DNA of 64,000 nucleotides, from positions 81,654,001-81,718,000 of the forward strand of contig NC_042999.1 of NCBI RefSeq assembly GCF_006345805.1, given 5' to 3'. The notes under the pieces were generated by a model. That model was given only the letters and a program-made list of their open reading frames with translations. It did no database searches and was not told where the DNA came from. Position 1 is the stretch's first letter. Every line of letters begins with the position of its first letter. The translations under genes were made by a program, and so were the position numbers. Below are positions 2,915 to 57,344 of this stretch, in pieces. Source of the stretch: Octopus sinensis (Eukaryota).

Positions 2915-3534
2915 CAGACAGCCTATCTTTCTATTTATATACCAAACTATTAATTATTGTGTATATATATATATATATATATATACATGCATACATACTC
3001 AGAAATATATAAGCAGACCCTACTTTATTATATAATTTATATCTAAAAGAGTGGCTTCCAGCTAATTCTACAATATACATATTAATACAAAACTCATTTA
3101 TGATGTTAGATTAAATGTACATAGATTGAATTATGAACAATATCAAATTATTTTTTCATATTCTGACTTTATTTTCCTTATTTATCAACATTATATTAAT
3201 ATTTAAAGTTTGTTCAAACAAAAAATGGGGTTACACAGAATATGGGACATGACTATACAAGTGTAAAGGGACATACATTTTCTTAAGACTGAACTTTTTA
3301 TATTTTTTATTGATTTCCCCATACTACTTCCTAAAATTGACATTTTGAAAGGTCATAAGCCACTGTGAGAAAATGTTTTTATTTACAAATATGTTGATAG
3401 ATATACAATGCGAAGAAAAAAATATAGAAAGGAAAAAAAACAGAAAAATGCTTTGTAATGAAATTTCGATCAAATTGTAAAGAAACCGTTATCTACCTAC
3501 CTACTACCTACCTACCTATCTATCTATCTATCTT

Positions 3535-3615
<81 letters not shown>

Positions 3616-4299
3616 AATCTATCAATATATAACTATCTGTCTTTCTGTCTGTCTGTCTATCTGTCTGTCTGTCTGTCCGTCTGTCCGTTTGTCCGTTGTC
3701 TGTCAGTATGTTTGTCTATCTATCTATTCTTTCACCATTGCTTATTATTTTTCCCATTTCTTCATTGTCTTGAAACCTCTCTCTCTCTCTCTCTCTCTGT
3801 CTATTTCCCCACCTCTTCGCTTTTCTTTCTTTGTTTACCCCTTTTTCCAAAAAACATAAACATTTTTTTCCTCTTCTAAACAAATCAAAAAAATCACCCG
3901 ATCATCTGATTCATATAAATAAACAAGGAGACGTTCTGTTATTACCATATTGAATTTGATTTGTCATGACGAATTCAAATAACGAACGAGAGCTCTAATA
4001 AAGATTTATCCAAAATTCTGACTGTCTCATTTTTCTCAATATACAGTATCTCTCTCTCTCTCTACACACACACACACACGCACACACACAAACATATATA
4101 TGGTAAGAGCAGTGGACATAATATTCGGGCAGTTACAGAATCTCTCCCAGGAAAATTCCGAGGTTGGCTCCTTCAGATGGTGCGTATTTTTTTTTTTTGG
4201 TAAACTTCCTTTAGCTCCCATCCGATTTTACAGATTATTTCCTGGCTACTTAGAGTGGAAAGTACAATATTGATAAGGAGAATGAGGAGAATGAAGAAT

Positions 4300-5421
4300 C
4301 TGAACATTCAAGCATTTTGTTTCTTTCCAGTTAAACGCCGTCTTCGACGGGAGTGTCTATCGTTTATGTATACATGCATACATACACACATACATGAAGC
4401 TGATAATATTATAAGACTTTCAAGGCAGCTTCCTGAGCAAAATTCTTTGTCTGATAACCTAGAATACATGTCCAAAGAAATCACACGACTCTACCGCAAC
4501 GTATCATCTGATGAAAGGTTAAGACTATATGAGCAGAAGACTATGCATGGATACGTTAGGAGAAAGATGATAGTAACACTGATCATAAACGCAGTTTATC
4601 ATGGATCAATAGGCGGATTACTACCTCCCACTTTGAAGGATATGCGTTTGCAATCCAAGAACAGGAAATATTAACGAAGTACCTGATACACAAAAGGGAT
4701 AGATATGCTGGAAAGCAGTGAAATATGACAACAAATGCAGACTTTGTGGAGCTAACACCGAAGATATCACCCACATCATAAGCAGTTGTCCGAAAATGTC
4801 ATCACCGTATTATCTACCGATGATACATGACGTTGTAGCTAGGACACACTGTAATGAAATATGTCGGAAGGATAATCACTAGGACAAAAAAATAAGAAAC
4901 TACAATATGGTAGAATCCATTGCCAGTCATAATAAAAAAGAAAACTGGTGGAATGAACCAGTGAAGACCTCAATAAAATGTAAGCACAGCAGACCTGATA
5001 TAATGATTTGGGTTAGAGAAGAGAAAGTGTGCACAGTTGTGAAAATTAGCTGCCCAGCGGACGTTAACATACAGCTGAAGATCAGTGAAAAAGAGAATAC
5101 CCATGCTGAACTATTGACATACAGATTCTCTGTCCAGATTATAAGTTCAGATTTATAACTGTAATTATTGGGGTCCTGGGATATGTAACACACTGCCTAA
5201 ATAACAATCTTGAGAATTCAAGCTTCGCAAAACCAGGCAGGAGAAGGCTAATTCGAAGATTACAGATACAATCCATGAATCGAACTGTAAAAGTCTGTAA
5301 CACATTCCAGATGTTTATCATTTAAATATATATGAGCATGGCTAGATATGCAACTATAAGCTTGAGAATACATACAAAAAACTTACAAATCTGTTCATAC
5401 ATACATACATACATACATAAA

Positions 5422-5455
<34 letters not shown>

Positions 5456-5680
5456 CATACATACATACATACATACATATACACATACATACGTACATAT
5501 ATACATACATACATGTATGCATGCATACAAACATACAAACAAAAGCACTGTAGTTGATGTTGAAATTCCAATGAGGGAGCCTTGGATCTAGGTTAGAAAT
5601 CGGCTCTTTCTCTATCCGCAAGAAATGTTGAAATAAACTGAATAATGACATACATACATACATACATACATACATACACG
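4300..5680 (+). mobile_element. 5'-truncated non-LTR retrotransposon with restriction-like endonuclease (R4/Dong-like), degenerate, with (TACA)n tail
   Basis: Frameshifted translation gives CRLCGANTEDITHIISSC (CCHC finger, about 4736-4789), HDVVA, RPDIMIW...VVKISCPAD (PD..D/E nuclease) and IPVIIGVLG. Stop at about 5323, then a 3' UTR containing and ending in (CATA)n. Confidence 0.85.
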
Positions 5681-6486
5681 ATAGACTCACCCGCCGAAGA
5701 CGACGTATGTACATTCGGCTATTGCCGAACGACCTTCACAAATAATTTGTTGACAATGATCGAACGTATGTGCTATACATCAGCACCTTCTCTCCATCAA
5801 ATCGACGTTGACTGAACAGCTGCACGGTGTAACACACGTGAGGTGACGAAGTGATCGCAGAGCAATTTCAAATGAATTATTCTACTCATGAACACAACGA
5901 AACACCCAGTCTAGTAATTGAAACCGTGATCTCACGATCGTAAATGCATTAGCCTCATCACTACGACACTCATTAATGCTACTTATGTATGTTAGTATTC
6001 TTCAGTTATATGTTAGTATTGATAAACAATTATATTTTGTCAAGATTTAGATTTTTCGTTTTGATTATATTTTTTGTCTATATAATATATATATATATAC
6101 AAATATAACTTTAAATGTTTTATATAATGCCAAAGCTTTCTGTCTAGTATTTTTATTTGTTTATCATTGCATGTTATTAACTATTTTTGGAACATGATCA
6201 GGATTCAGAAAACAGTAAAGGAACGGAAAGAAAGAGAAGATAATTTGTCTCGTTAGATATTCAATTTTGTACTACAAACTGAAAGGAACTAGCTTTTGGA
6301 TATAATTATTTTTAGTGAAATATACGTAGAAAAGCCCACACACACAAAAAAATTCAGTGAATATGCATGTATTAATACACACAGAATTACACACACACAT
6401 ATATACACACACAAATCTTCATGCGTGTATAGATATGTATGTAATATATGTGTGTATATATATATAAATGCATAAGTATATACATC

Positions 6487-6556
<70 letters not shown>

Positions 6557-6601
6557 TACACACACATATTATATATAATATATATTATATATTATATATA
6601 T

Positions 6602-7017
<416 letters not shown>

Positions 7018-7028
7018 ATATATATATA

Positions 7029-7107
<79 letters not shown>

Positions 7108-7523
7108 TTACATATATATTCATGTATTATGTATGTATGTAAATATGGTCCTCGGTTGGATTCCACGTTGCAGACTCAGGTGTTCGAACAACTGAATTGT
7201 CACTCGAAATGGTTTGAAACACGATGATCATTCCGCAGGTATGTGCATAACGTAATAGAAGAGCTGACTCAACGTGACAGGGTATGCCGTACGTTGGAAT
7301 GACAAGTTTAATGCATTCAACAAGATTCTTTCTAGCTTCACTATCAAGTTATACGGTGACTTGTGTATATAGAAAATGAGATTAATGGAATATGCAATCC
7401 CTTAAGGTCGAACCTGAGAAATCGTTCTTGAGAATGAGGAATGTAAACATTCGGCCGTACTTCTATATGTGTACATAGCTACTCACGCAAAAGCACGCTG
7501 ATGCATACATATATATATATATT

Positions 7524-7567
<44 letters not shown>

Positions 7568-7924
7568 ATATATATATATAATATATATTATGTGAAATAG
7601 AAAGATGAATAATCTTGTAGTAGATTAATCAAAAGTTTAACCGATACCTTAGTAGCAAAAATCACAGCAGTAAACAGCACGGTTGGAGGTACAACCATAT
7701 GGTGTTGCAACCGTGCGTTGGTGCGGATAATTGAAATTAAAACATTATTGGTGAATTGAAGAAATGGAGCTGAACGCAGATTGAACAGAAATCGTTTTAT
7801 TTCATTCTACACATGTTATATATATATATAAGAAAGTTGGTTTGTGAAAGCACGTGGGTGAATATATAAAAAATAGTAAAGAGTGAAAAAACGACAGAAG
7901 GCTTAAATGTTAAAAAATATATAT

Positions 7925-8417
7925 ATTGCAGCGTGGAAGGTGTTTATAAGCCATTTAAGAAATACACAAAAGCCGTTCGATTCACTTCAACATTTAAGTT
8001 TAATTTGTCAAAATATTTTCGTCGCTAAAATCCGCGACCTGTTCACTGACAAAGTCCGTGCTGCATCTAAGAAAGTAACAGTTAGTTCGTCATATATATG
8101 TACGTATGAATGTGTGTATGTATACATACATGTGTGTATGTATGTACGTATGCATGTACGTACATACGCCTGTGTATGCATGCATGTATGTATGTATGTA
8201 TGTATGTATATAGGAGAATGGGCAGACGTGTCAGTGTGTACATGTGTATGTGTATGTGAACGTATGTCCGTGTACTGGCATGTGTCCGTCCAAGTTGTGT
8301 ACATGACTGTTACTTTGCTGAAGGTTGTATACATATTCACATATATGTTTGTATAGACGTACACACACATATATATATGTGTGGGTGTGTGTTTGTTCCT
8401 CTCATCATCGTCTAACT
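7925..8417. repeat. Left arm of a long inverted repeat flanking a PLE fragment
   Basis: Near-identical reverse complement of 9320-9526 plus about 10010-10327. Confidence 0.9.
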
Positions 8418-9183
8418 TGCATTCGGAATATGTAGTGCTGGATGCAATGCTCCGGATACACACAAGACGATAGAGTCAGGGTGTACAAAGGAGCGAAAGC
8501 TAGATCCGAACGCATTCTAAGGAACGACGAAAACGGTATATGCCCCCTGTACCGCAACAAGTTCTGGAATAGGTTTGAGAGGGACACCAACAAAAAGATG
8601 AGAAACGTTACTTGGTACGATAACAGGAGATTTCACGGAGTGATGTTCGTTGACGACACACCTAAGAACGAGCTAAGTAAGGCATTCAAGAAGGTCCTGC
8701 GCACTACGGGCCTAAAAGTTAAAGTCGTAGAAAAGACAGGTAGTACTATCAAATCGGCATTATGCAGATCATATCCATTTGATAGAATCACCTGTCAAAG
8801 TAATTGTGCAGTATGTTCGACAAATCCACATGTAAATTGTAAAACCAAGGGCACTGTATACCAGATTAAGTGCCAGGAGGGAGCTTGCGCGACTAACCCA
8901 GAGTCATACATAGGTGAGACCTCTAGAAGCATCAATGATAGGTTCAAAGAACACCTGGACAACTACATTGAAAGGAAGCCAAACTCCATCTTCTACCAAA
9001 TGCTGTAGACTGCCAACAAGGATCCTTAGGGAAGCTTAAGTTGAACATCCTATCAACACATCCCACCGATGCAATGTTGAGACAGGTCACAGAAGCTGTT
9101 TGTATATACAAGAATAAACCTACTCTCAACCGAAAGTCCGAATGGAGTAACATCCAGATACCATTCAGAAGCACTATTCTATA
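8418..9183 (+). pseudogene. Penelope-like element C-terminal region (RT thumb/linker, Cys-rich motif, GIY-YIG endonuclease), frameshifted near 9000
   Basis: ORF 8442..9008 contains MQCSGY, CQSNCAVC, VYQIKC...YIGETSRSINDRFKEH. It continues in another frame as AMLRQVTEAVCIYKNKPTLNRKSEW. Confidence 0.9.
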
Positions 9184-9319
9184 ACCACCCATCTCTCTCT
9201 CTCCATTTTACCTGTAGTCCTTACATACAGGTTGCAATGCGTATGTGCAGTTATATACAACGGTATGAGCGGACGTTGTTTGATACGGACAGTTGCACTT
9301 AGGCGTTGTATCCATTCAC

Positions 9320-10325
9320 AGTTAGACGATGATGAGAGGAACAAACACACACCCACACATATATATATATGTGTGTGCGTCTATACAAACATATATGTGA
9401 ATATGTATACAACCTTCAGCAAAGTAACAGTCACGTACACAACTTGGACGGACACATGCCAGTACACGGACATACGTTCACATACACATACACATGTACA
9501 CACTGACACGTCTGCCCATTCTCCTAGACACTCACATACATACGTAGCACATGAATACAAACATACATACATACCTACGTATGGGCATACACACGTACAT
9601 ACGCACGTACATGTACGCACACACATACATGGGCACGTGCATACGAGCGCGGATACATACATACACACATGCGTACGTATGTACATACACACATACATAC
9701 ACACATACATACATACATACATAATACATACATACATACATACATACATACATACATACGCACATACATACATACATACGCACAATAGTAAAACAATAGT
9801 TCTGTGATATAGAGATAAAGATCTGATAATAGTGTTTAGCGTATAGTTTTGGGAGTAAGCATCGTAAATCACTTTCTAGCTTCGGCCGTAGGAAGTTGAA
9901 ATTTGATAGCTTTGTGATGAGTGGTCACTCTACATCCATCCATCGCTACAGGTTTATAGCTTTATGTTTTATAGAGTGTGTGTGCGTGCATATACAACAC
10001 ACATATATACATACATACATACATACATACATACATACATACAACATACATACATACTACATACATACATACAGCATACACAGGCGTATGTACGTGCATG
10101 CATACGTACATACATACACACATGTATGCATACATAACACATACATACGTACATATATATGACGAACTAACTGTTACTTTCTTAGATGCAGCACGGACTT
10201 TGTCAGTGAACAGGTCGCGGATTTTAGCGACGAAAATATTTTGACACATTAAACTTAAATGTTGAAGTGAATCGAACGGCTTTTGTGTGTTTCTTAAATG
10301 GCTTATAAACACCTTCCACGCAGCA

Positions 10326-10327
<2 letters not shown>
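9320..10327. repeat. Right arm of the long inverted repeat, with about 480 bp (9527-10009) missing from the left arm
   Basis: Direct reverse-complement comparison with 7925-8417. Confidence 0.85.
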
Positions 10328-10377
<50 letters not shown>

Positions 10378-10383
<6 letters not shown>

Positions 10384-10450
10384 AACGAGGCCCCTTTTTC
10401 GGTTTCCGTCGACCAAATCCACTCACAAGATTTTGGTTGGACCGCGGCTA
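10378..10450 (-). mobile_element. Internal fragment of tRNA-derived SINE family A (host family of the insertions at 22.6-27.4 kb)
   Basis: Reverse complement matches CTACTATAGC...CCAA...TTGTGAGTGGATTTGGT.GACGGAAAC seen at 27140-27195. Confidence 0.7.
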
Positions 10451-10873
10451 TAGTAGTAGATACTTGCCATAAAAATATACATAAACACACGTTCTATATA
10501 TTCGATCTTCAGTCGTTTATTACTGATCTTATTTTAACTCATATCCATTTTTCGGAAATCTTTCGTCTTACTCCGCTTAGTCCAAGGATAGACTAAGCAG
10601 AAATATCTGTTTCAATAATATGTTTCAAGACACGGTTCCACATAAGAAATCTTGTATCAGATTCATGAACGTAAATATATATATATATATATCTCCTTAA
10701 AACCTTAAATATATTTTAGCCCGAAGGCCGCGGCCATGGTGGGGCTCCACCGATGAATATACATATATATATATATTATATATATATATTATATATATAT
10801 AATATATATATATATATATTATATATATATATATATAAATGAAAGAATGGAGTCGAACGACGATTTAACAAAA

Positions 10874-10972
10874 TTCCTTTATTCTCGACATATGTTTCGA
10901 AGACTGCATATTCCTAATTTCGAAGGAATAAGGGGTGCATTCTGCCGCCTTCTCATCAGGAAAGACAAGGAA
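10874..10972 (-). ncRNA. Type I hammerhead ribozyme (GUC cleavage triplet) in left inverted arm
   Basis: Minus strand reads TTCCTT-GTC-TTTC CTGATGA GAAGGC..TGCA..TATTCCT..AGGAATA TGCA GTCTTC GAAAC ATAT GTC GAGA-ATA-AAGGAA. All three stems can pair and the core is intact. Confidence 0.85.
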
Positions 10973-12700
10973 CTTATGTCAGCATCATGATGAACAAAAA
11001 CTTTTAGATGACCGCCCACACGGATTCCATAGTGATAATGGGAGGCAATTAGTGATAAGGGGAGGCAATCGGCAACCAACCCCAATTTTCCAGTACAGAA
11101 ATATTCCCTTTAATGTAAATGGTAACACTCTGAACAATTATAAGTCCACAAAAAACTATATCTGGTTTGTCATACCTTTCGGAAAACAAATCAAGTCAAA
11201 CCTTCCTTTACAGTTCCGTGAAGCCGTAGCTAGGAACTTTCCCAAGAATTCTAGGTATTACTCTACTATCAATTCGCATAAGGTAAGGATTGCATTCTCT
11301 AACACTAGAAATCTATCGCAAATTATTGCCTCCCATAATAACAAGCTGCTAAATAAGGATTCTTCACCCGGGAGTTACGACACTGCTCTTACCAGTTCCA
11401 ACCAAAGATACAATAATAATAATAATAGAAATAGTATTGATAATAGCAACATTCATAGCAGCGTTGGCATTAACAATGGTAATATTAATAATAGTATTAG
11501 TCGGATTATTAACAGTGGTAGTGTTAGTGGTAGTAACGACAGCATTTCTAATAACAGTGGTAGTATTGGTGATAACAACCCCAGCATTCCTATAGTCAGG
11601 GATATTGCCGGCGATAGTACAATTAATAGTAATGACAATAATAGAAATAGTACAGTGGTCAATGCTAGCAATAATATTAACAGCAATCATAACAATAAAA
11701 ACTCCGTCTTAGTCTCGGAGGTAAACCCTAACAGATTAAAGTTCTTGTGCAGCAATTCCAAAATTAGAAATTCCAGTTACCAGTGTAAAATTTCTTCGGT
11801 ACCGGTGTCTTCTTCTACATTGGGGCGACTACTTCTAAATTATCCCAGAGGATTTCCAATCATTATTCAACTTTCCGAGATAAGAGAAAACAACAAAGCA
11901 CAGGACTAAGTAAATTAGTTTGGCGTCTTAAGGACAGCAATATAACTTTCAAGCTGGAATGGTCCATATTGTCTGTATCCTTTCCGTTTGATAAGGGCAG
12001 AAAATTTTGTGGCGTCTTTAATTCCGAGCTTTTCCATATATTTTCGCCAAATTCCCTTTGGTAAACACAATGGTAGAAAAATCCTATAGGTGCATGCACT
12101 GGCAGAAACACACCTTTCACTCATATGAATGATGATTAAGATAGATAACCTCATTGAATTTAATAATTTGGTTGCACTTATACAACACCACCATAGACAA
12201 ATTTTATACTCCGTTTCATCAAGGACTACTACCAAATTCGTTTGGGTATGTTTTACCTTTATCTCCCTAACTCACCCTCCTCTCTCTCTTTCTTTCCCTC
12301 TCTCTATCGTAAGCACAATCAAACACACAGACACAAACCTGTCACTTCACCACTGGTTGTTTTTGGCATCTATCCCCCCACACAATCACGCACACACATA
12401 CACACACATAGACACGAATGCAGTTATATACATACACACACATAGGCACTCAATCTCATTAGCAAAGGCAAACAACAGCACATCACCATACATACGACTT
12501 GCACCCAGTCACCTTCCTATTCTTAGGAATCTCCCCTTCCAACCTTTTTTGAACTCTTGAACTTTCTAGAATCTTCTCCATTCAACCAATTTTGACGTCA
12601 CTGCTTATAATGGAATAGTTTAAAGAAACACTCATTATTACTATGGACTCCGTGTGGGCAGTCATCTAAAAGTTTTTGTTCATGATGATGCTGACATAAG

Positions 12701-12799: not shown

Positions 12800-13009
12800 T
12801 TTTGTTAAATCGTCGTTCGCCTCCATTCTTTCATTTATTTATAGTAAAAAACACACAAATTTCCACACGAAAGCACGTGATCTCTGCCCTTGGCATGTAG
12901 CTTCAACCGTGTTTTCTGACGTGAATTTGCTACCCGGGTATCGGTTAACCGAATTATCCATACTAGGATAATTAATTCAACTACTTATATATATATTATA
13001 TATATATTC

Positions 13010-13160
13010 ATGTATATACGGCGCCTCTCTTTCAGTTTCCCTCTACTAAATCCACTCACAAGGCTTTGGTTGGACCGAGGCTATAGTAGAAGCCACTTGT
13101 TCAAGGTGAGAATGAAAACCGAACCAGGTGGTCAGGAATCAAGCTTCATAATCCGCATCC
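13010..13160 (-). mobile_element. Older, degenerate SINE family A copy with an uninterrupted (empty) target site
   Basis: Reverse complement TAGGCATGG...ATGAAGCTTGATTCCTGACCACCTGGTTC...CTACTATAGCCTCGG...GTGAGTGGATTT is colinear with the spliced-together host SINEs. Confidence 0.7.
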
Positions 13161-19671: not shown

Positions 19672-20308
19672 TAGGCGGTAAGCTGGTAGAAACGTTAGCA
19701 CGCCAGGCGAAATGCGTAGTCGTATTTCGTATGCCGTTACGTTCTCAGTTCAAACTCCGCCGAGGTCGACTTTGCCTTTCATCTTTTCGGGGTCGATAAA
19801 TTAAGTACCAGTTACGCACTGAGGTCGACATAATTGACTTAATCCGTTTGTCTGTCCTTGTTTGTCCTCTCTGTGTTTAGCCCCTTGTGTTTAGTAAAGA
19901 AACGGGTATTTCGTCTGCCGTTACGTTCTAAGTTCAAATTCCGTCGATGTCGACCTTACCTTTCATTTTTACGGGGTCGATAAATTAAGTACCAGTTACG
20001 CACTGAGGTCGACATAATTGACTTAATCCGTTTGTCTGTCCTTGTTTGTCCTCTCTGTGTTTAGCCCCTTGTGTGTAGTAAAGAAACGGTTATTTCGTCT
20101 GCCGTTACGTTCTAAGTTCAAATTCCGTCGATGTCGACATTACCTTTCATTTTTACGGGGTCGATAAATTAAGTACCAGTTACGCACTGGGGTCGATATA
20201 ATGGACTTAATCCGTTTGTCTGTCCTTGTTTGAACTCTTTGTGTTTAGCCCCTTGTGGGTAATAAAGAAATAGGTATTTCGTCTGCTGTTAGGTTCTGAA
20301 TTCAAACT
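19672..20308 (+). mobile_element. SINE family B: one head followed by three tandem 184-bp body units and a partial fourth
   Basis: Unit starts GTATTTCGT at 19722, 19906, 20090 and 20274. Confidence 0.9.
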
Positions 20309-20324
20309 TTTGAAGAGGAGGCCA

Positions 20325-20492
20325 CATGATCAAATCGGCCCCAGTACGCAACTGGTACATCATTTCTTGATCCGAAAGTATGAAAGGCAAAATCGACCTC
20401 GGCGCAATTTCAACTCAGAACGTAAAGACAGACGAAATACTGCTAAATGTTTCGTGCAGAATGCTAAAGTTTCTGCCAGCTCACCGCCTTAA
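20325..20492 (-). mobile_element. SINE family B copy, opposite orientation
   Basis: GAAAGGCAAAATCGACCTCGGCG...CTCAGAACGTAAAGACAGACGAAATAC...TTCTGCCAGCTCACCGCCTTAA is the reverse complement of the family B head. Confidence 0.8.
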
Positions 20493-21115: not shown

Positions 21116-22683
21116 AATAGTGGGAAATAGACAGTGACCAGGAAAAGGTAATTCAGTTTTTGATAGCGAATCGGCGTCGAGTGAAAGAGCAAAGAAGTAA
21201 ATTTGTTGACTTACATCTTATAAGATCGAGAAGTTTCATGTATTTTGCAACAAGCATGCCAGAACAATGAAAGTAATTGCTAACCGTGGGGTGAAGATCA
21301 GAAAAAAACACACGCATGGCTATACACACAAACACACACAAACACACACACACACACACGCACACACGCACAATGAAATGAATTCAAAGAAACGCTAGCT
21401 CACACACATGAACACTCACGGACAAACACATACACATACAAACACACATCATATAAAAACACGCACACAAACATACATGTATGTTCTATATGGATAAGGC
21501 TTTTTGAAGAAGATTTGTTCTTCAGATATTTTATCGAAGAAATTAGGTAGTACGCACACCCTCTCTCCTTTTCCCTCTCTTCTTATCTCTTTCCCGATGC
21601 CCACTCTCTCTTTCACGTTCTCTCTTCTTGAAAGTACTATGAAAGACATGAAAGATTAAATTGTTGGGGAACATGATTTTATACGGAATGTGCACAAAAG
21701 GTCTGTTGAAATTTAGAAAAGAAGAAAAATTAATACCAGGAGAAATTAGGAGCTAATGAATAGGAAAAATGAAATATTATACGAAAGAAAATCTAAATTG
21801 CACAAAAACGTTGAAAGAATAGCACAAATTTTTAATTACGAATGTGACAAACAAATAATATTTTATTAGATGTGGGACTAGAAAACAAGCACACATTTGT
21901 AAGTGTTATAGATATAGAGTACTTATGTTCATAATGAGGCTTGCACAAATATTGGTTTGTGTAGATTTTACCGAAATTAGTTTCAGAATATTTGACAAGA
22001 AGTTAACAGAATAGGTGCTTGACTAAAACGATGTCACAGGAACAAATATATCTTCAGTGAAAAACAACATAAAGAAACGTGAGAAGTAATGAAATATGAA
22101 ATGGAATTAGTTTAAAATTCAAACTAATATAAAATATATCCGTTATCTGTTATATATTATTATATACATTATTTCAGAAAAAAAGTATATGAATGAAAAT
22201 AGAAGAGGAAATTTAACATAGAATCATAGTGGTGTTATATAGCTATCGACCTCATTTTTACCACGCACGTACATACACACCCACGAATACACATACATAG
22301 ATTCAGTTGTATGAGTATATATAAAAACAATTAGAAATTAAACTGAAAAATTAATACTTATTAGCAGATTAATACAGATTTAATAAAAAGTTTAGATTGA
22401 AACAGTGATTATGCAACTATTTGTTTGCTTAATGAGATCTAGTTGTGTTTCCTAAGGTGATATACGAGTGTTGTCTCCGTTAGCTTAATATCCAATTTCT
22501 TCAATTTTACATCCACGCACGGCGAATGACCAAACTTCAGCTGTGAAGTATATAATACTACTACTGATAGTACATGGTAATTCTGAACGTGGCCGTGCTT
22601 TATACTGTACACTACCACGTTTCTAACGGAATACAATATAACTATATATATAGGCGTGACCGTGTGGTAAGAAGCTTGCTTCC

Positions 22684-23856
22684 GCGCATGCATTGTCTAA
22701 TAGTTGTTGTGTGAATTTGTTGAGAGTCGGTTTTATCGTGCTGCTTAGAAAGTGTATTCATACCTTAGCGGGTCTGAGTTGTCTTCAGCAGAGGAGGAGC
22801 TGGTAAGAGTGGTCGTAAAGATGGACGGAGTGTTGGAGAAGACATGCTGAAGTCACGGAGATGATACGAAGGGAGTTAGACTTGGTAGCTGGTCTGATGG
22901 CGTATGAGAAGATGGTACAGAAGGTGGCCGGCGACTTCCCCAAAAGGAATTATGGAGCGGAGTGAGAGAAACACGATCATCTATAAGGTGTTCTCGTTAA
23001 ACGGTGTTCTTGTAAAAAGGTCAAGCAGGTAGAAACTGAAATGGAAAAGGCGCTAAGGGAGCGGTCAAAGGAAATAACATACATAACTAAAAGAAGGAGA
23101 TATAGGACAATAGTCGTCCAGTTTAGGACAGTAGTGGTGGCGAGAAGGCTGGCGACTGTAGCGGTGAAAATAGAAGTAGTGCTTCTGCACGCATACATTG
23201 GAAGAAAGACTTCCAAGGTAAGGATAGTAGCAGTCCCACCTGATATAGAATGGGCTTGGGTGGCGACGGCTGCCCTTATTGGAAGTGAGGAGATAGTGGC
23301 TGTCCTTCAAGCCACAGAAACGGAAAAAGGAGGGTAGAAAGAGAAGATACTAGAACTAATTATACAGGCGGAGGAACAGCATGTGGAGAGTTTGGAAGAG
23401 ACGGTGACGTTGGAGGAAATTGTGCTGAGAGTATGGCTAGAGGGCAGAGTACCATGTTGTTTTAAATGTGGCCAAACGTGTCACATTAGCGCATACTGCC
23501 CTCTACAAAGGACAATAACAGAGGAAACATTTGTGGCGACGGAAGAGAAAAGAGAGGAAGAAAAGACAGACGGAGGAAAGGAGGAAAAGGAGGCAGAATG
23601 GAGAATAACAGAAAGTAGAAGGAAGAGACGAAAAGAAAGAACACTGAGTCTGATGTGGTACCCAGCCCAACTCCATCCCACCCAAGACCACTCAGACCCA
23701 TCCATGCTATCATAATTTTAATTTGATTCCATGTTCATTTTCATGTGTCATTCATATCATATTATATTTTTATATATTTCTAATTGTTTAATGTCACCAC
23801 ATATATTGTAGTGTCCCCTATATGTAATGCCTTTATGGTAAAAATATTGAAATAAA
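22684..23856 (+). mobile_element. ORF1-only (half-LINE-like) retro-insertion E1 with TSD GAAGCTTGCTTCC (22671-22683 / 23857-23869)
   Basis: Perfect TSD of 13 bp (15 bp with the preceding AA). Starts GCGCATGC and ends TTGAAATAAA. Disrupted ORF with PPDIEWAWV and LEGRVPCCFKCGQTCHISAYCP; no RT or endonuclease motifs seen. Confidence 0.85.
22952..23715 (+). pseudogene. LINE ORF1-like nucleic-acid-binding protein with CCHC-type zinc knuckle (E1)
   Basis: ORFs 23041..23337 and 23383..23715 share a frame and are separated by one TAG; upstream MERSERNTIIYKVFS lies in a shifted frame. Confidence 0.7.
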
Positions 23857-24815
23857 GAAGCTTGCTTCCCAACCATATGGTTCCGCGATCAGCCCCACTG
23901 TGTGGCACATTGGACAAATGTCTTCTGCTATAGCCTCGGGCCGACCAAAACCTTTTGAGTGGATTTGGAAGACGGAAAGTGTCATTAATATGTGTGTGTG
24001 TGTGTATGTTTGTGTATCTGTGCTTGTCCCTCCATATTCGCTTGACAACTGATGATCGTGTGTTTACGTCCCCGTAACTAAGTGGTTCGGCAAAAGAGAC
24101 GATAGAATAGTACTAGAATTATAAAGAATAAGTCTGTTCGACTAAAGGGGGTACTCCAGCATGGCAGCAGTTATATAGATTAAACAAATAAAAGAATAAC
24201 AAGAATAATAGAATACACACACAAATATATATATATTTATTATATATGTGTATATATATGTAATAATAGAAATAATATATATATAACTAATGTAGGATAA
24301 ATATTTCTTTTCCAGAAAAATTTTTTATCAATGGCCAGCATATCAAAAAATACCTTTAAATGTTAAATTTATAAATAATTTACAAAATGAGGGCAAAAGA
24401 AAAATTCTAATGCCAAATATGCCGAAAAAAAAGACAAAAATTGTCAATAACCATTGTAATTTATGCGTCTCGAAACAAACCGATAGAAATTTCTAAAAAA
24501 TCCGTTATTACCGTATTGGTCCCAATTTCGGGGTTAATTCATAAGAATTCTCCCCTCTTCAACGATAAATACGCGAGATATAAGTGAAATACTCATACCC
24601 ATGGAAAAAGCAAGCACTAAGTCCTGAGCAGACCTAAGTACCCGAAATATATCTAAAATAGAAAATCTTCGGCACATCTCGAGACACGTGTGATTCGAAC
24701 TAGAAACTTTCACAGAGTGAGAGAATCCGGAAGTGAACACTATTAAATTTATAACTAATGTACGATAAATTTATAACTAATGTAGGAGTAGCTGTGTGGT
24801 AAGTAGCTTGCTAAC

Positions 24816-27069
24816 GCACATGCGCAGTTAGTCAGTTGCTTCCTGTTCAGCCAGAGTGGACGCGAGTCAACCAGCTCCGTTCAATTAAAGAAAAAAGACC
24901 AAAAACGGAAAGTTGTCGAGGTAAGTGATTTTGTTTATTGTGAGTTGGGCATAATTTATTGCGTGCCAATTATTATTTCAGTAAGTTGTGTCCAACTCTG
25001 AGACAATTTCGCCTGCTCTCGGCGGCTGCCGTTTTTGTGTTCATTGAAAAAAAAAGAAAAAACAGTGGAGGGGCGTATCCTCGGAATTCAATACAGTTAC
25101 TGTTAAAATTACCGTTGGCGGTAGCCAGTGCTATGTTTGGGTTTGTTAAAGTTATTCCCTTGTCAGAGTACTTCGCAAGAAAATTATAAAAATAAGCCAC
25201 TATTGGATTACCTTTCGGACCCATTTTTGTGGAGGTTGTGTTCCAGTTCGGCGTTCCAGGTTCAACCCAGGCCGGGAGTACCGCAAGGCCAGAATATTTT
25301 TGCTATGTTTTTTCTGTTTATTAACATTCTTTTGAACTTCATTTAACCCCCCCTTTTGTTTTTTTTCTTTATTGCGACTTTCCGTTGATTTCTTCCCTTC
25401 TGTTGTGCTTTCTCCTATTTGTTTTTTCAAAAATCTATCAAATTTTATTTGGACTTTTGAACTTTTTTCTTCTTGCTTTTTGAGTTTAATTTGAATATAT
25501 TTAAAAAAAACATGGCAATGAAAAATAACAAAATTTTGGAGTGGGAAATCATACCACCTAAAAAGTGGTTAAAAGACCCTGAAGATAGGACGGTGGTGTT
25601 GAGAACTTACTCCAAGGCACTCGACACCATCGCCCTATTCGAAAAGACGGCAATTGAAAAGGAGTTGGAAGAGTATTTGCCAACAATTAAATTCATTTCC
25701 AGGGGTGTCAAATATGCAACGGTGTGGTTGCTATTTGACACCCCTGAAAAGGCTTGCAAATTTGCTAGCAAACCCCTGGAGGGTAAGGAAATCTTATTCC
25801 TGCCCACGTACAAAAAAAAGAAATTGATGAAAGCTTGGATCTGCGGGCTGCCACCCGACATAGAACCCGAGTGGATAGAGGAGACTATCCGCCGGGGTCT
25901 GGGTGGCAGCGAAACTAAGCTCCTTAATGTAAAAGTTCTTCCTGCGGCTGCTTGGGTTGGGTCAAAAGCAATTTTGACCCTGTAGACCCAATCAGCCAAT
26001 CTGGTTCTTCCACATTTTTTGAAAATGGCCGGGTGCAGGTACCCGGTGATGCTTGAGGGTCGCCCCCCTAAGTGTCATCGGTGCTTGGAGTCCGGCCACA
26101 TAAAGAAGAACTGTCCCCGGGAACAAAATAGGATCCCGGAACAGTTAAGTAAAACCCCTCTAGAAGAGAGAATGATAACGGCCGAGAAAGCAGAGGACTC
26201 CTCAAGGAGAGGCCGAAAGAGGAAGGTGAGCAACAATGGGTGCTCACCAAAGGATAATAGGGATGAGGAGAGGAAGGCGAATCTTCCGGCCACGGAGGAG
26301 ACGCACCCTCCCTCAGTTGAAAAGGGAAAAAAAAGAAAAAGAGGAAGAACAACGGGACATTGCTGGCTGTCAGTGACATAGCATCGGAATGTCCCGGAAC
26401 TACGTCGGTTGGGGTTGTGCCACCGACAAGAGAAGGAATACCGTTGGCGGGAACTGTGCCGCCAACGAAAGAACTGAACGTATTGGTCCTCTTCTATAGA
26501 GGAGGCGAAATTGAAAAGGTGATGGAAGAGCACCACAAGGGAGCACCTTTAGCTTTCACGCAAGACCCCGAATGGCCTCCGCAGGTAGCTGTGGAGGCCG
26601 TGGCGTTCGACGTGACGCTTGGGCTAAAGGAGCTCAATGAAGATTATAACTTGGTCCCGGGCGACGCAAACTCGGAACTTGATTACGTTCTGAGAGAGGC
26701 GTGGTTGATGGTGGATGGCGAGGGCACAAGCTATTTCGAGGACGATATGTAATTATTGAACTGTTATTATTAGTAATGGACTGCTAAGTCCAAAAATTGA
26801 AAAATTGTAAGAGGTTTAATACCTCGTTTTGTAATAATGGACTGCTAAGTCCAAAAATTGGAATAATTGTAAGAGGTTTAATACCTCGTTTTGTGTTTAT
26901 CTTTAAAAAGAACAATGTTTTAGAGAAGCGAAAGTCGGCGGGCGCTTTTTGTCTTCTCCCATCCTTATCATCTTTCTTTCATTATCATTCACTTCATTAA
27001 TGTCCTCGTCCAGCCCGCAAAGCTAACTTAATCTGTGTACTGCCTTTATGGCAAATGTTTTGAAATAAA
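24816..27069 (+). mobile_element. ORF1-only (half-LINE-like) retro-insertion E2 with TSD GTAGCTTGCTAAC (24803-24815 / 27070-27082)
   Basis: Perfect TSD of 13 bp (15 bp with AA). Starts GCACATGCGC and ends TTGAAATAAA. One long ORF and a short 3' UTR with a roughly 60-bp tandem duplication (26773-26892). Confidence 0.9.
25512..26752 (+). pseudogene. LINE ORF1-like protein (about 410 codons) with CHRCLESGHIKKNC zinc knuckle (E2)
   Basis: ATG at 25512. One in-frame TAG (25983-25985) joins ORFs 25473 and 26019. A probable frameshift in the A-run near 26327-26340 links to ORF 26360..26752. Confidence 0.8.
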
Positions 27070-27652
27070 GTAGCTTGCTAACCAACCACATGGTTCCGGA
27101 TTCAGTCCCACTGCGTGGCACCTTGGGCAAGTGTCTTCTGCTATAGCCCCGGGCCGACCAATGCCTTGTGAGTGGATTTGGTAGACGGAAACTGAAAGAA
27201 GCCTTCGTATATATATTTATATATGTATATGCGTATGTGTGTGTGTTTGTCCCCCTAGCATTGCTTTACAACCGATGCTGGTGTGTTTAAGTCCTCGTCA
27301 ATTAGCGGTTCGGCAAAAGAGACCGATAGAATAAATACTGGGCTTACAAAGAATAAGTCCCGGGGTCGATTTGCTCGACTAAAGGCGGTGCTCCAGCACG
27401 GCCGCAGTAAAATGACTGAAACAAGTAAAAATATATGCTTGGCCGCTAAATCCACGATTTGTTTTTATTCTCTCTCTGTTTATTTTTTCTTATTTCTTTT
27501 GTTGTAGGGCTTAGGTTCGAAGCGTAAAATTCTTTTTTACTTTCCTGATCGTCAAACTAATGCGCTTGCTTTTTGTTCGTGCGCCTGTCTTCATCTTTTT
27601 TTTTCTTTAAATTTCAGCTATATATATATATATTATATATATATATATATAG

Positions 27653-53379: not shown

Positions 53380-56300
53380 TAAGTACTCAACTGGAACTTA
53401 CGTTATTGACCCCGAACTTGGCGGAATTTGAACACAAGATCTAAAGACGGACAAAATGCCGCTAATCATTTGTCTGGAGTACTCACGATTCCATCAGCTT
53501 GTCGCCTCTGTTTTTTTTCTAAATGTTAAGATTTGCGGAAATTTCCCAGTAAGGTACATTGTCGAATTGCGACTTACATTTTAATTAGGATGTTTATGCT
53601 TTCCTGATGGTCGTTTAGAAATAAAGATATTCAGTTGATTACGATATAACTATCTGTCCTGTCAGAGTAGATTCACCGAACGTATGGTCGTTTTTACATA
53701 ATTTTGTGATGTATTTACTGTATAAGTATGACAATTTCTGATATAATTCCATCATCCTCAGATAAGTTCCTGTGAATAATACACAAAAAAGATATTTTGT
53801 ATACTAGTGTCACAGTAATAGCATAGACTTGCATGGACCTGTCACACACGAAAACATACCTATATGCACGAACACACAATGATACCGAAAACCACATATG
53901 TTACATAAACATAGTCAACGTACAAATAAAAAAATCTGCATACAGATAGAGTAAAAATGAGAGAGGTACCGAGAGGCAAGGTGTGTGGGAGATAGTGACC
54001 GAAAAGTGTACGATAATTCCTTCCTACACTAGGCACCAGGCCCCATATTTTGGGGTAGGGTCCAGTCGATTAGATTGATCCAGTGCGCAACTGGTACTTA
54101 ATTTATCGACCCCGAAAGGATGAAGGCAAAGTCGACCCCGGCGGAATTTGAACTCAGAACGTAGCGGCAGACGAAATACATATTTCTTTACTACCCACAA
54201 GGGGCTAAACACAGAGAGAGGGAACAAACAAGGACAAACAAACGGATTAAGTGAATTACATCGACCCCAGTACGTAACTGGTACTTATTTAATCGACCCC
54301 CAAAAGAATGAAAGGCAAAGTCGACCTCGGCAGAATTTGAACTCAGAACGTAGCAGCAGACGAAATACCGCTAAGCATTTCGCCCGGCGTGCTAACGTTT
54401 CTGCCAGATCGCCGCCTTCAAGTATACAATAATTGAAGCAGAAATTTAGGCAGATGAACTAAGAGAACGATAAATACGAAAGTACGTAGGAGGAGGGTCC
54501 ATTCAATACGGATAAAGTACGCACACATACTCTCAAAAATGTGTCTCATTGTGTATTTGTATTTATGTGTAGATTACAGTGAATATAAAACCTTCAGCTT
54601 TACCAACTAATTTATTTGTCATTTTACACACAACTATTGAACATTTCTCACTCAATCATTTGACGTAGTTCAATATGCTTACAGCATACGAAGACACACA
54701 AACACATTTACATATACCAATGTAGCATTCTGTAAGTTCTCCTTAACGTACATGTACTCTAGGAAGCTTCAAAAGTGCAGTATTCGGCTCGAGAATGCAT
54801 CTCGTATAGAAGTATAATACAACCTAATACCGAAGAATATCAATAGTGAACGCCAAGCGATCAGGAGCGGCGGCAGAATTGCTAAATCCTGATTTTTGTC
54901 TCCTTAAGGTAATGACACACATACACGCGCACACACATATTTACATACACTCGCGCGCACTCTCTCTCACACACACACACATACACTCACACACCACTTA
55001 TGCATGTATGTTTATGTATGTATGTGTGCGTGTGTGTGAATGCATGTGCGTGCGTTTGTATGCTTGTGCGTGTGTGCCTGTTCATATAAATATTTCACAT
55101 ATTTACTAAGCTGTCGATTATAAACCACTGGAATATATATTTCTTTACTACCCACAAGGGGCTAAACACAGAGGGGACAAATAAGGACAGACAAACGGAT
55201 TAAGTCGGTTACATCGACCCCAGTGCGTAACTGGTACTTAGCGTTTCTGCCAGCTCAGGCAGCGAGCTCGCAGAATCATTAGCACGCCCGGCGAAATGCT
55301 TTGTGGTATTTCGTCTGCCGCTGCGTTCTGAGTTCAAATTCTACCGCGATCCACTTTACTTTTCATCTCTTCGTGGTCGCCTATAATGTCATATTAATCA
55401 TATATAAACTTCTACATTTTAGAATTTGAGGTTTAATTAATTACTTGTTAATTTATTAAATTTTGTTGATATAAAAGTTTTATTATTTTAAAATCACGGT
55501 ACTTTAGATGTGTAAGTCCATTATTTATTGGGTGTATTTTATGCTATCGTCTACTTCAATGAATTATTCGATAAATTGTTCATATATGTTATAGCATTAG
55601 TTTGTTTCGTTCTCCAATAAAATTTACATGTTCTTTATTTCTTAAACTAAGGCGGCTAGCTAGCAGAAGCGTTAGCACACCGGGAGGTATTTCGTTTGTC
55701 TTGACGTTCTATGATCCAATTCCGCCGAAGGCAACTTTGACTTTCAACCATTCATAATTTAAGTACCAATTGAGTACTGGGGTTGATCTAATCGACTAGC
55801 CACCTCCCCAAAAATGTTGGATCCTGTGCCTAGAGTAGAAAATAACAAAATTCGTTTGTTCATTATTTCTTAACTTAAGGCGGCGAGCTGTCAGAAACGT
55901 TAGCACGCCGGGCGAAATGCGTAGCGGTATTTCGTCTGCCGTTACGTTCTGATTTCAAATTCCGCCGAAGTCGACTTTGCCTTTCATCCTTTCGGGTCGA
56001 TTGAATAAGTACCAGTTACGCACTGGTGTCGATATAATCGACTAATCCGTTTGTCTGTCCTTATTTGCCCCCTCTATGTTTAGCCCCTTGTGGGTAGTAA
56101 AGAAATAGGTATTTTGTCTGTCTTTACGTTCTGAGTTCAAATTCTGCTGAGGTCGACTTTGCCTTTCGTGCTTTCGGGGTCGATAAATTAAGTACTAGCT
56201 GTGTACTGGGTTTGATCTAATCGACTCGCCCCCTTCTGCAAATTTTCGGCCGGGCTTGTGCCTAGAGTAGAAAAGATTATTTCTTAACTTAGTGTTAACT

Positions 56301-56890
56301 TTAGTACTCAGTGCCTCCGCTTTTTTTTTTTTTTGCTCTAATTAATCAGCTGCGTATAAATTCTGAAAATAAATTTTTTTCTGTAGGTTCTATTTTCGAA
56401 CGAGTTGTTTTTCAGTAAAAAACATTTAAAGTTTGTTCGCATTAGGTTTTGGAACGTGACATTTTACTTATATAAGTATTTCAATTTTACTGTAGGTTTA
56501 TAAGCCCATTGGTTAGCGTTGTAATATACGTGTTCTTAGCTTTCATTTTGATTATAGAAAAACTCATGGCTTAAAATTTTGGCGCAAAGCCAGCAATTTT
56601 GTGAGAGGGCGCATGTTGCTTATGTGTATATTTGTAGTTATCTATGCGATTATAGGCCCATTGTTAACGTGGTATATGTGTTCTTTCTCTTCACATTATG
56701 GAAACATGGTTTCAAATTTTGGCGCAAGGCCAACAATTTATGTGAAGAGATGGTAGTTATTGTATGGAACCCCAAAATATGAAAGGCAAAGTCGACCAGG
56801 GAAGATTTTAAACTCAGAAATTAAACATGAATGAAATGAGCTAAGAATTATGTCCGGAGTGCTAAGAATTATGTCAGTTCACTGCCTTAT
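53380..56890. mobile_element. Cluster of SINE family B copies in both orientations, including dimers at about 54020-54420 (-) and 55875-56280 (+)
   Basis: Repeated GTCGACTTTGCCTTTCATCC / AAGTACCAGTTACGCACTG / TTAGCCCCTTGTGGGTAGTAAAGAAAT motifs. Confidence 0.85.
53721..53770 (-). ncRNA. Possible decayed hammerhead motif
   Basis: Minus strand CTTAT CTGAGGA TGAT GGAATTAT ATCA GAAA TTG TC ATA; stem III and stem I are defective. Confidence 0.3.
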
Positions 56891-57344
56891 TAAACCGAAT
56901 AGAAATAATACTTAAAACGTAACGTGAGGAAATACAATCATGAATAGGAGTAGGTAAAAAAATTGCTGAAGTCGCTAACAAAAACTGCGTGTACGTTAGC
57001 TACAGTTAAATCAAATGCATATCATAAACTTGCGAAATAAAAATTTCAAACTAATAAAATAAACATGTAAAGCTGGTCGGTCAGAACGTTATTACTTTTC
57101 ATAATAACAAGAATCTATTGGATGAAATCGATTGACCTTTGACGGTAAAATATAACTATTGAAAATTCAGTCGAAATTTAATTAAAGACTAAATGTCATA
57201 AATTGCGTATATTCATGGAACTAGGAATAATAACGATAGAGAATAAAAATTATGACATTTTTGAAAGTAATAGTTTAAGAATAATTTGACTTAAGAGAGT
57301 TAAAAATTAACATTCAATTTAAGAATGAATAATTACATATGCAT

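Follow-up and report, generated by a model that had tools for sequence, protein, structure and literature searches.

Diverged ORF1-only LINE derivatives at one nucleotide of a SINE family in Octopus sinensis: a candidate SINE-targeting lineage

Introduction

HAL1, or half-L1, is a derivative of the mammalian L1 long interspersed element (LINE) which contains only the first open reading frame, ORF1. Outside the L1 elements of mammals, LINEs of the Tx1 group insert into specific targets, including other transposons, and in crocodilians non-autonomous elements share these targets (PMC4494074). The targets described for the group include Tx1D, Mariner-N4_AMi (with a 16-bp target-site duplication, TSD), long terminal repeat (LTR) and Harbinger elements, small nuclear RNA (snRNA) and 5S genes, and microsatellites (PMC4494074, PMC3706591). 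Tandem insertions which sandwich the TSD have also been reported, and the SINEU elements share the target of their partner, Tx1-Mar (PMC4494074, PMC3706591). In Octopus vulgaris, among the LINEs with recent activity, L1-Tx1 (13 families and 421 insertions) is the only superfamily of L1 type, and short interspersed elements (SINEs) make up ~11.6% of the genome (PMC13282606). Here we describe two ORF1-only LINE derivatives, insert 1 and insert 2, which interrupt two copies of one SINE family (SINE-A) at the same nucleotide within a 64,000-nt stretch of the Octopus sinensis genome (GCF_006345805.1, NC_042999.1, positions 81,654,001 to 81,718,000 of the forward strand; hereafter the window). Positions are those of the window unless another locus is named.

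Results

Insert 1 (22684–23856, + strand, 1173 bp) and insert 2 (24816–27069, + strand, 2254 bp) interrupt SINE-A at the identical nucleotide, and each lies between perfect 13-bp TSDs which carry the variant of its own host SINE. By exact-match search the sequence GAAGCTTGCTTCC was found at 22671–22683 and 23857–23869 (left and right TSD 1) and GTAGCTTGCTAAC at 24803–24815 and 27070–27082 (left and right TSD 2), all on the + strand, with no further occurrence of either 13-mer within the 64-kb window; this agrees with the bounds and sizes given to the inserts in an earlier reading made from the letters of the window (the sequence-only reading). The two TSD pairs differ from each other at three positions, and within each pair all three positions are identical. 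Such concerted variants indicate that the duplications were made at insertion, into two SINE copies which had already diverged, and neither segmental duplication nor an inherited composite would yield this pattern.

When the flanks are joined, one SINE is rebuilt for each insert. Copy 1 consists of a head (GGCGTGACCGTGTGGTAA plus the left TSD, 22653–22683, + strand) and a body and tail (23870–24200, + strand), and copy 2 of a head (GGAGTAGCTGTGTGGTAA plus the left TSD, 24785–24815, + strand) and a body and tail (27083–27431, + strand). Both heads align with those of uninterrupted SINEs, the body of copy 1 is recognised by BLASTN to other SINE copies and that of copy 2 is 88% identical to one O. 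sinensis SINE copy. The two rebuilt SINEs are 75% identical over 363 bp. As DNA, the only stretch that the inserts have in common is their last 34 nt, at 85% identity (BLASTN, insert 1 vs insert 2), and the absence of internal DNA similarity reported earlier is thereby confirmed. Together with the host-specific TSD variants, the 75% identity of the flanking SINEs and the inserts that cannot be aligned as DNA uphold the earlier proposal of two independent insertions. As proteins the inserts do align, as had also been noticed: their ORF1 translations match at E = 5e−14, with 28% identity over 165 amino acids (BLASTP).

Neither insert contains a reverse transcriptase (RT) or endonuclease (Pfam: weak zf-CCHC match only), and when the intact ORF2 of a related LINE from O. 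vulgaris (locus L004, described below) was used as the tblastn query, no match to a related ORF2 was found anywhere in the window or in two of the further loci, L001 and L005. The inserts are thus L1/Tx1-type LINE derivatives and not autonomous members, with ORF2 absent, as the sequence-only reading had them.

A degenerate, uninterrupted SINE-A on the − strand (12991–13160) shows the empty site, GAAGCTTGATTCC followed by TGACCA, at ~13135–13147, and the earlier identification of an uninterrupted copy near 13.0–13.16 kb is therefore correct. A second SINE-A fragment (10361–10468, − strand) is truncated at the 5′ end and, being headless, is uninformative on the site. Seven more uninterrupted copies in the fetched loci read GGTAAG(T/A)AGCTTG(T/C)TT(A/C)(C/T) up to the insertion point and CA(A/G)CC(A/G)CATGG after it, and the empty site in O. 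sinensis and O. vulgaris loci is GGTAAGTAGCTTGTTTAC followed by CAACCACATGG, or near variants. The target motif is thus GGTAAG(A/T)AGCTTGCT, with the insertion point after GGTAAG(A/T)AGCTTGCTNNC and before CAACCA, and it lies in the loop of a predicted hairpin with arms GTGTGGTAA and TTACCAACCACA. All four occupied targets (the two in the window and two more, below) have TTGCT, and TTGTT is found in 4/7 uninterrupted copies, although such small numbers do not establish TTGCT as a requirement for recognition.

A homologue search with the ORF1 of insert 2 led to two O. sinensis gene models, whose loci, L001 and L002, were fetched irrespective of their flanks. In L001 a SINE head ending in ..GGCTGTGTGGTAAGTAGCTTGCTTCC meets the element 5′ end TGTGCATGCGTTG.. 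at 4489/4490, and in L002 a head ending in ..GCCGTGTGGTAAGAAGTTTGCTTCC meets ACTGCGCATGTGCGAG.. at 11740/11741; in both, the SINE nucleotide and the orientation are identical to those of the window copies. As these two copies were retrieved through protein similarity alone, their identical junction supports the earlier suggestion that this SINE position is a real target. At the nucleotide level insert 2 is 77.5% identical to the element of L002 and 74% identical to that of L001, and the SINE heads differ at several positions among all four copies. For a SINE of ~400 bp, with ~800 combinations of position and orientation, the chance of coincidence for three extra copies is ~(1/800)^3, and chance is an implausible explanation for four independent copies at one position and orientation. 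The result, 4/4 copies of two lineages at one SINE nucleotide, points to sequence-specific insertion into a repeat, in what is a small sample. The 5′ ends of the four elements, around a GCGCATGCGC-like palindrome, vary by 0–4 nt, and target-primed reverse transcription is expected to produce such variation.

The same junctions could be accounted for if the SINE head, insert and tail were copied whole, as one composite unit, so that the junction was inherited and not targeted. In L001 and L002 the element follows a SINE head and no SINE tail is present, which makes a head travelling with the element conceivable. However, the three variant positions which are identical within each TSD pair require a duplication at insertion, the heads of the four copies differ from one another, and uninterrupted SINEs are common. 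It should also be noted that the SINE halves can be aligned, at 75% identity, and the inserts cannot, which means that the two parts have different histories. The TSD variants and this unequal divergence contradict a composite element, and we regard it as highly improbable.

A second alternative concerns the nature of the target. The SINE-A head had been read as derived from a tRNA, and this was not confirmed: ARAGORN and Rfam called no tRNA in the head, in the intact copies or the consensus, and the A-box-like TGGCTGTGTGG and B-box-like GGTTCAGTCCC on either side of the insertion site were recognised only by eye. If the primary target were nevertheless a tRNA or other small-RNA gene, SINE heads would be struck because they retain the recognition sequence. 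Known relatives do insert into small-RNA genes or spacers (Keno in U2, Mutsu in 5S, Dewa in a tRNA-Leu spacer; PMC3706591, PMC4494074), and a related ORF1-only element, in L005, also occupies a SINE head, one from another family. On the other side, 4/4 copies are in SINE-A and 0/4 in a tRNA gene, and the SINE-A head is not recognised as a tRNA. We consider this explanation improbable, though less so than the composite unit.

Insert 1 has the 5′ end GCGCATGC... and a decayed ORF1 (22752–23715, + strand), in whose translation an RRM-like (RNA recognition motif) region and a CCHC knuckle (CFKCGQTCHISAYC) can be recognised. GTG stands in place of the start codon, and there are one frameshift, near 22845, and three in-frame stops. 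The C-terminal part, beyond the knuckle and basic tract, which is carried by insert 2, L005 and L004, is missing. The protein has 62% identity to P0003 and 52% to P0004, and with the ORF1 of the intact L004 LINE the figure is 39%. Its conserved 3′ tail (..GCCTTTATGGTAAAAATATTGAAATAAA, 23823–23856, + strand) is the stretch which it has in common, at 85% identity, with the tail of insert 2 (..GCCTTTATGGCAAATGTTTTGAAATAAA, 27036–27069, + strand).

The 5′ end of insert 2 reads GCACATGCGCAG and is followed by a 5′ untranslated region (UTR) of ~700 bp. Its ORF1 (25512–26381, + strand) contains two RRM-like domains, a CCHC knuckle (CHRCLESGHIKKNC) and a basic tail, with one in-frame TAG at 25983–25985; both gene model P0001 and L002 have TGG here, so the TAG is a plain mutation. 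Insert 1 likewise has a TAG in frame (23335–23337), and in both ORF1s the stop falls after the RRM region and before the knuckle; the positions of the two are not homologous. A second reading frame of 130 amino acids (26360–26752, + strand) is in frame −1 relative to ORF1, a relation which is kept in L001 and L002. A homologue search found none for this frame, and its ratio of non-synonymous to synonymous substitution rates (dN/dS) was 0.68, vs 0.48 and 1.30 in the shifted frames, giving no selection signal. The idea that it corresponds to the 'FP.DVG' C-terminal domain of related ORF1s was not supported, as hhalign gave no profile match. The 3′ UTR contains a 62-bp tandem duplication in two copies (26774–26894, + strand). 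In the 5′ UTRs of the insert-2 lineage, AAG is followed by GTAAG or GTAGG in each case (window 24921, L001 ~4588, L002 ~11839), and further on a long pyrimidine tract lies directly before the ORF1 ATG; going by these motifs, a 5′-UTR intron could have been retained.

We searched the ORF1 profile against 1.84 billion representative proteins at E ≤ 0.001 and obtained 692 protein matches. Where the source of a match covering the greater part of the profile was looked up, it was O. vulgaris, O. bimaculoides, O. sinensis, Argonauta hians or a sequencing contig; matches with many short matched stretches were unrelated multi-knuckle proteins. Both inserts have the CCHC motif, although in insert 2 the Pfam zf-CCHC match is below threshold, vs above it in relatives. 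An AlphaFold model of P0001, which is 64% identical to the ORF1 of insert 2, had a mean predicted local distance difference test (pLDDT) score of 80.8 and consists of two beta-alpha-beta-beta-alpha-beta units and then the knuckle. Foldseek matched this model to tandem-RRM proteins, namely SFPQ/NONO/PSPC1, hnRNP A1 UP1, U2AF65 and HuC. On the strength of this model, ORF1 is predicted to comprise two RRM-like domains and a CCHC knuckle, and we take it to be of the RRM-plus-CCHC type of LINE ORF1 protein. The ORF1 of mammalian L1 is instead built from a coiled coil, an RRM and a C-terminal domain (CTD).

ORF1 appears to have been conserved by selection. Between L001 and both insert 2 and L002, its dN/dS was 0.21–0.23, and the shifted-frame controls gave 0.87–1.36; as the ratio is well below the controls, ORF1 was under purifying selection while the insert-2 sublineages diverged. 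The closer pair, insert 2 and L002, gave a weak signal (0.46 vs 0.60–0.95 in shifted frames). To judge from these substitution ratios, the selection would have acted on ancestors of the insert-2 lineage, whether or not these were ORF1-only by then.

Fragments of the family ORF1 were also found annotated as parts of host genes, in gene models P0002, P0004, P0007, P0019 and P0053. In some models of this sort the fragment is fused to an integrase, to a C2H2 zinc-finger array or to a Helitron helicase, and others are named 'EPM2A-interacting 1-like' or 'ABC transporter F family member 4-like'. These chimeric or misnamed models are probably annotation artefacts.

Autonomous relatives of the inserts were found at other loci. 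Locus L004 (O. vulgaris OX597840.1, 1–13026) contains an intact ORF1 of 503 amino acids followed by an ORF2 of 1132 amino acids with Exo_endo_phos, RVT_1 and zf-RVT domains, that is, an apurinic/apyrimidinic endonuclease-like (APE) domain, an RT and a zinc domain. The best match of this ORF2 to a solved structure is the human L1 ORF2 protein (ORF2p; E = 2e−71 over residues 3–868), with R2 reaching only ~1e−24. A second full LINE, in L003 (O. sinensis CM016872.1), has an ORF2 which is 45–60% identical to that of L004, and in L008 (O. bimaculoides CM046601.1) the start of an ORF2 is followed by an assembly gap. In the ORF1-only loci, L002 also has an ORF2 fragment on the minus strand (8435–7282), with no recognisable 3′ tail or target junction around it.

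The last 50–60 nt are conserved between the window inserts, the ORF1-only elements of L005, L009 and L010 and the full LINEs (L003, L004, L008), with the common tail TTGTnTTGTCCCC..CCYTTRTGG..AATAAA. If a partner RT reads the 3′ end, a non-autonomous derivative would need exactly such a common tail. The intact relatives, having this same tail and ORF2s with APE, RT and zf-RVT which are closest to human L1 ORF2p, bear out the earlier assignment of ORF1 to the L1/Tx1 type. A longer element with APE and RT and the same termini had been named as something to look for: L003 and L004 share the 3′ tail, and none was found at this SINE site. We looked for a conserved stem-loop in seven 3′ tails with RNAalifold and rejected one, as the result was a 3-bp hairpin only, with no real covariation.

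After the stop of ORF1 and before the start of ORF2, several lineages carry GGTAAG(Y)(R/A)(C)ATG, a consensus 5′ splice-site sequence (L004 7329–7342, L005 ~7899–7911, L006 ~8168–8180 and L008 ~6869–6880). Loss of ORF2 by splicing at the junction GGTAAGT was considered and rejected: the motif is kept in the ORF1-only elements of L005 and L010, so it was not the deletion donor.

The portion of the element which is retained varies among the ORF1-only copies (insert 1, insert 2, L005 and L009), so ORF2 was lost more than once in the clade. This raises the alternative that an autonomous SINE-targeting LINE exists and that each ORF1-only copy arose dead on arrival, from its own deletion or abortive event, with no half-LINE family behind it. 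Insert 1 lacks the region past the knuckle and basic tract, L005 retains the ATG of ORF2 and L009 stops inside ORF1; the 3′ UTR is ~317 bp in insert 2 vs ~100 bp in L002; and several unrelated lineages within the clade have lost ORF2, all of which such separate events would explain. Nevertheless, insert 2 and L002 are both ORF1-only at a dS of ~0.3, and ORF2 is absent from every SINE-A-targeting copy with a 3′ end (insert 1, insert 2 and L002). It is also established that the usual abortive LINE product is a 5′ truncation, not a precise loss of ORF2 with both termini kept. Insert 2 and L002, both ORF1-only, have 3′ UTRs which align too poorly for a comparison of breakpoints. On balance we think this alternative unlikely, if the most serious of those considered.

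The related elements lie in several kinds of target. The full LINE of L003 has (ATT)n on both sides (5720–5780 and 11335–11375), which suggests a microsatellite-specific lineage. In L005 (O. sinensis CM016880.1, 6425–8080), an ORF1-only element with 45% amino acid identity to insert 1 has entered the head of a SINE from another family, SINE-B, with an 18-bp TSD, AGAAA(C/T)GTTAGCACGCCG; an uninterrupted SINE-B adjoins it, and the ORF2 ATG and a few codons are kept before the 3′ UTR. L009 (O. bimaculoides CM046605.1, 5755–6690) has the N-terminal two-thirds of ORF1 fused straight to the clade 3′ tail, with a TSD of ~17 bp (ACACAAC[A/C]CAGTT[C/T]GT), and it seems to have inserted into the 5′ UTR of a further family member. 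L010 is an ORF1-only element in unidentified flanking sequence with an 11–12-bp TSD. In L004 three LINE units stand head to tail with a period of 5284 bp and unique flank upstream. The ORFs are intact in the first unit, the junctions read ..AAAACAC(TGATA/CCGAT) and then AGGACGTTACTTTGAC, forming a short repeated junction, and the flank before the first unit ends in ..GAACCCGAC; the array looks like the product of successive insertions, each into a site which the TSD had restored.

The LINE of L008, placed by its 3′ end only, adjoins SINE-B ~15 nt downstream of the L005 site. Its flanks (5616–5760 and 10400–10490) are SINE-B in opposite orientations, both from SINE-B position ~96, and the LINE holds a 2.9-kb assembly gap; the opposed flanks could stem from rearrangement or from faulty assembly. 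L006, L007 and L008 were uninformative, being affected by foldback repeats or assembly gaps. SINE-B also occurs in clusters in the window (19673–20490 and 54090–56895), where runs of units start from SINE-B position ~82. These runs, and likewise one in L009 (11262–12574), look like local tandem amplification of the 3′ part of the SINE.

Elsewhere in the window, a run of long ORFs occupies 3458–12560 (+ strand), and at 8442–9008 it contains a GIY-YIG match below the Pfam cut-off (E = 4e−4, 21.0 bits vs a cut-off of 22.6). This may indicate a Penelope-like element. The scanned ORFs of this run gave neither an APE nor an RT match.

Discussion

We consider it likely that inserts 1 and 2 are decayed, diverged ORF1-only lineages from an octopod clade of L1/Tx1-type LINEs, mobilised in trans to the SINE site. 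Each insert keeps a 5′ UTR headed by the GCGCATGCGC-like palindrome (which presumably resembles an NRF1-type promoter element), an RRM-plus-CCHC ORF1 and the clade 3′ tail (CCYTTRTGG..AATAAA), and the marks of target-primed reverse transcription are present as perfect 13-bp TSDs, conserved 3′ tails and variable 5′ ends. In the mechanism that we propose, the insert RNA would be bound in trans by the ORF2 protein (APE and RT) of an autonomous relative which recognises the tail, and would then serve as the template for target-primed reverse transcription at a single specific site within the head of this abundant SINE. The bottom strand would be nicked at GGTAA^G, or ≤2 nt further left, and the top strand 13 bp downstream at C^CAACC, which would give a 13–15-bp duplication.

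With a 13-bp TSD, the breaks fall at C^CAACC on the top strand and C^TTACC on the bottom strand (5′–3′), both before YWACC-like pentamers, and the similarity of ^CAACC and ^TTACC fits a single sequence-reading endonuclease which cuts both strands. As the element ends in AAA and the SINE head in TAA, the TSD could be up to 15 bp long, and the bottom nick would then be CTT^AC, as the sequence-only reading had suggested. Specificity would be set by the endonuclease, and an abundant SINE may offer the elements the advantage of a safe haven.

Several points weigh against this reading. L001 and L002 have the SINE head upstream and no SINE tail downstream, L001 being broken inside the element at ~5990 and L002 seemingly ending in ..CATTGTCTTATGGATATTTGAA and passing into (TG)n at ~13766, so the complete structure with TSDs is limited to the two window copies; we read the missing tails as later rearrangement of old copies. 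The site sample comprises four copies only, which come from the window and from an ORF1 similarity search. No full-length element with APE and RT was found at this SINE site, and the closest autonomous relatives, in L004 and L003, lie elsewhere. L008 adjoins SINE-B at a position other than that of L005, so strict site-specificity cannot be claimed for every association of lineage and SINE in the clade. Finally, we infer membership of the Tx1 clade from the L1-like ORF2 and the literature, and not from an RT phylogeny.

A wider interpretation, which we hold only tentatively and as somewhat short of an even chance, is that octopods have seen a radiation of L1-Tx1 LINEs, each lineage homing to one nucleotide of its own interspersed repeat, shadowed by long-lived ORF1 half-LINEs which are maintained by selection and parasitise ORF2p. 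The repeats of this radiation would be the heads of two SINE families, a microsatellite and the 5′ UTR of another LINE. If true, a HAL1-like strategy would have arisen repeatedly outside mammals, combined with SINE-directed safe-haven targeting. SINE heads would be added to the list of Tx1-type targets, the landing pad being a selfish repeat which is itself LINE-dependent, and an invertebrate counterpart to the mammalian HAL1 would bear on the question of why ORF1 is kept when ORF2 comes in trans. There are also practical consequences: nested elements of this kind yield spurious gene models, such as P0001, P0002, P0004, P0007 and others which are uncharacterised, chimeric or misnamed, and an endonuclease which nicks a defined site with a 13-bp spacing is of possible interest for targeted integration. 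Such use has reportedly been argued for R1 and SART1.

Among known systems, the Tx1 group offers several likenesses. The autonomous octopus relatives have an L1-like ORF2 with APE, RT and a zinc domain, and insertion occurs at a single fixed nucleotide within a sequence of many copies and gives TSDs of 13–18 bp, compared to 16 bp in Mariner-N4_AMi (PMC4494074). Different lineages use different repeats, as is the case for Tx1L in Tx1D, Tx1-Mar, Keno, Mutsu, Dewa and, in microsatellites, Kibi/Koshi. The head-to-tail array of L004, with its TSD-like junction, recalls the SINEU-3 tandems which sandwich the TSD (PMC4494074), and in both systems non-autonomous elements share the target. The differences are that the target here is a SINE head, for which we found no description in the searched literature, that the passengers are half-elements coding for ORF1 in octopus and SINEs in the Tx1 systems, and that the octopus elements are putative members of the clade.

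The inserts resemble HAL1 in that ORF1 and the LINE termini are kept and ORF2 is absent, with a presumed reliance on the ORF2p of a partner, and in the purifying selection on ORF1 between sublineages. They differ from it in belonging to another LINE lineage, in their type of ORF1 and in being site-specific, and their amplification as an ORF1-only unit is so far hypothetical. The R1 and R2 LINEs of ribosomal DNA follow a comparable safe-haven strategy, using one nucleotide of a highly repeated sequence whose copies are individually dispensable. They belong, however, to other clades, R2 has another endonuclease and matches the related ORF2 far worse than L1 ORF2p does, and the octopus target is a selfish repeat and not a host gene.

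The kind of system described here is thus known, both as site-specific L1-Tx1 LINEs with passengers in repeats and as ORF1-only half-LINEs. Going by the searched literature, which did not extend to Repbase or Dfam, what appears to be new is a defined nucleotide of a SINE head as the target, together with the use of another SINE family by a related element, and the combination of such targeting with recurrent ORF1-only derivatives in a mollusc.

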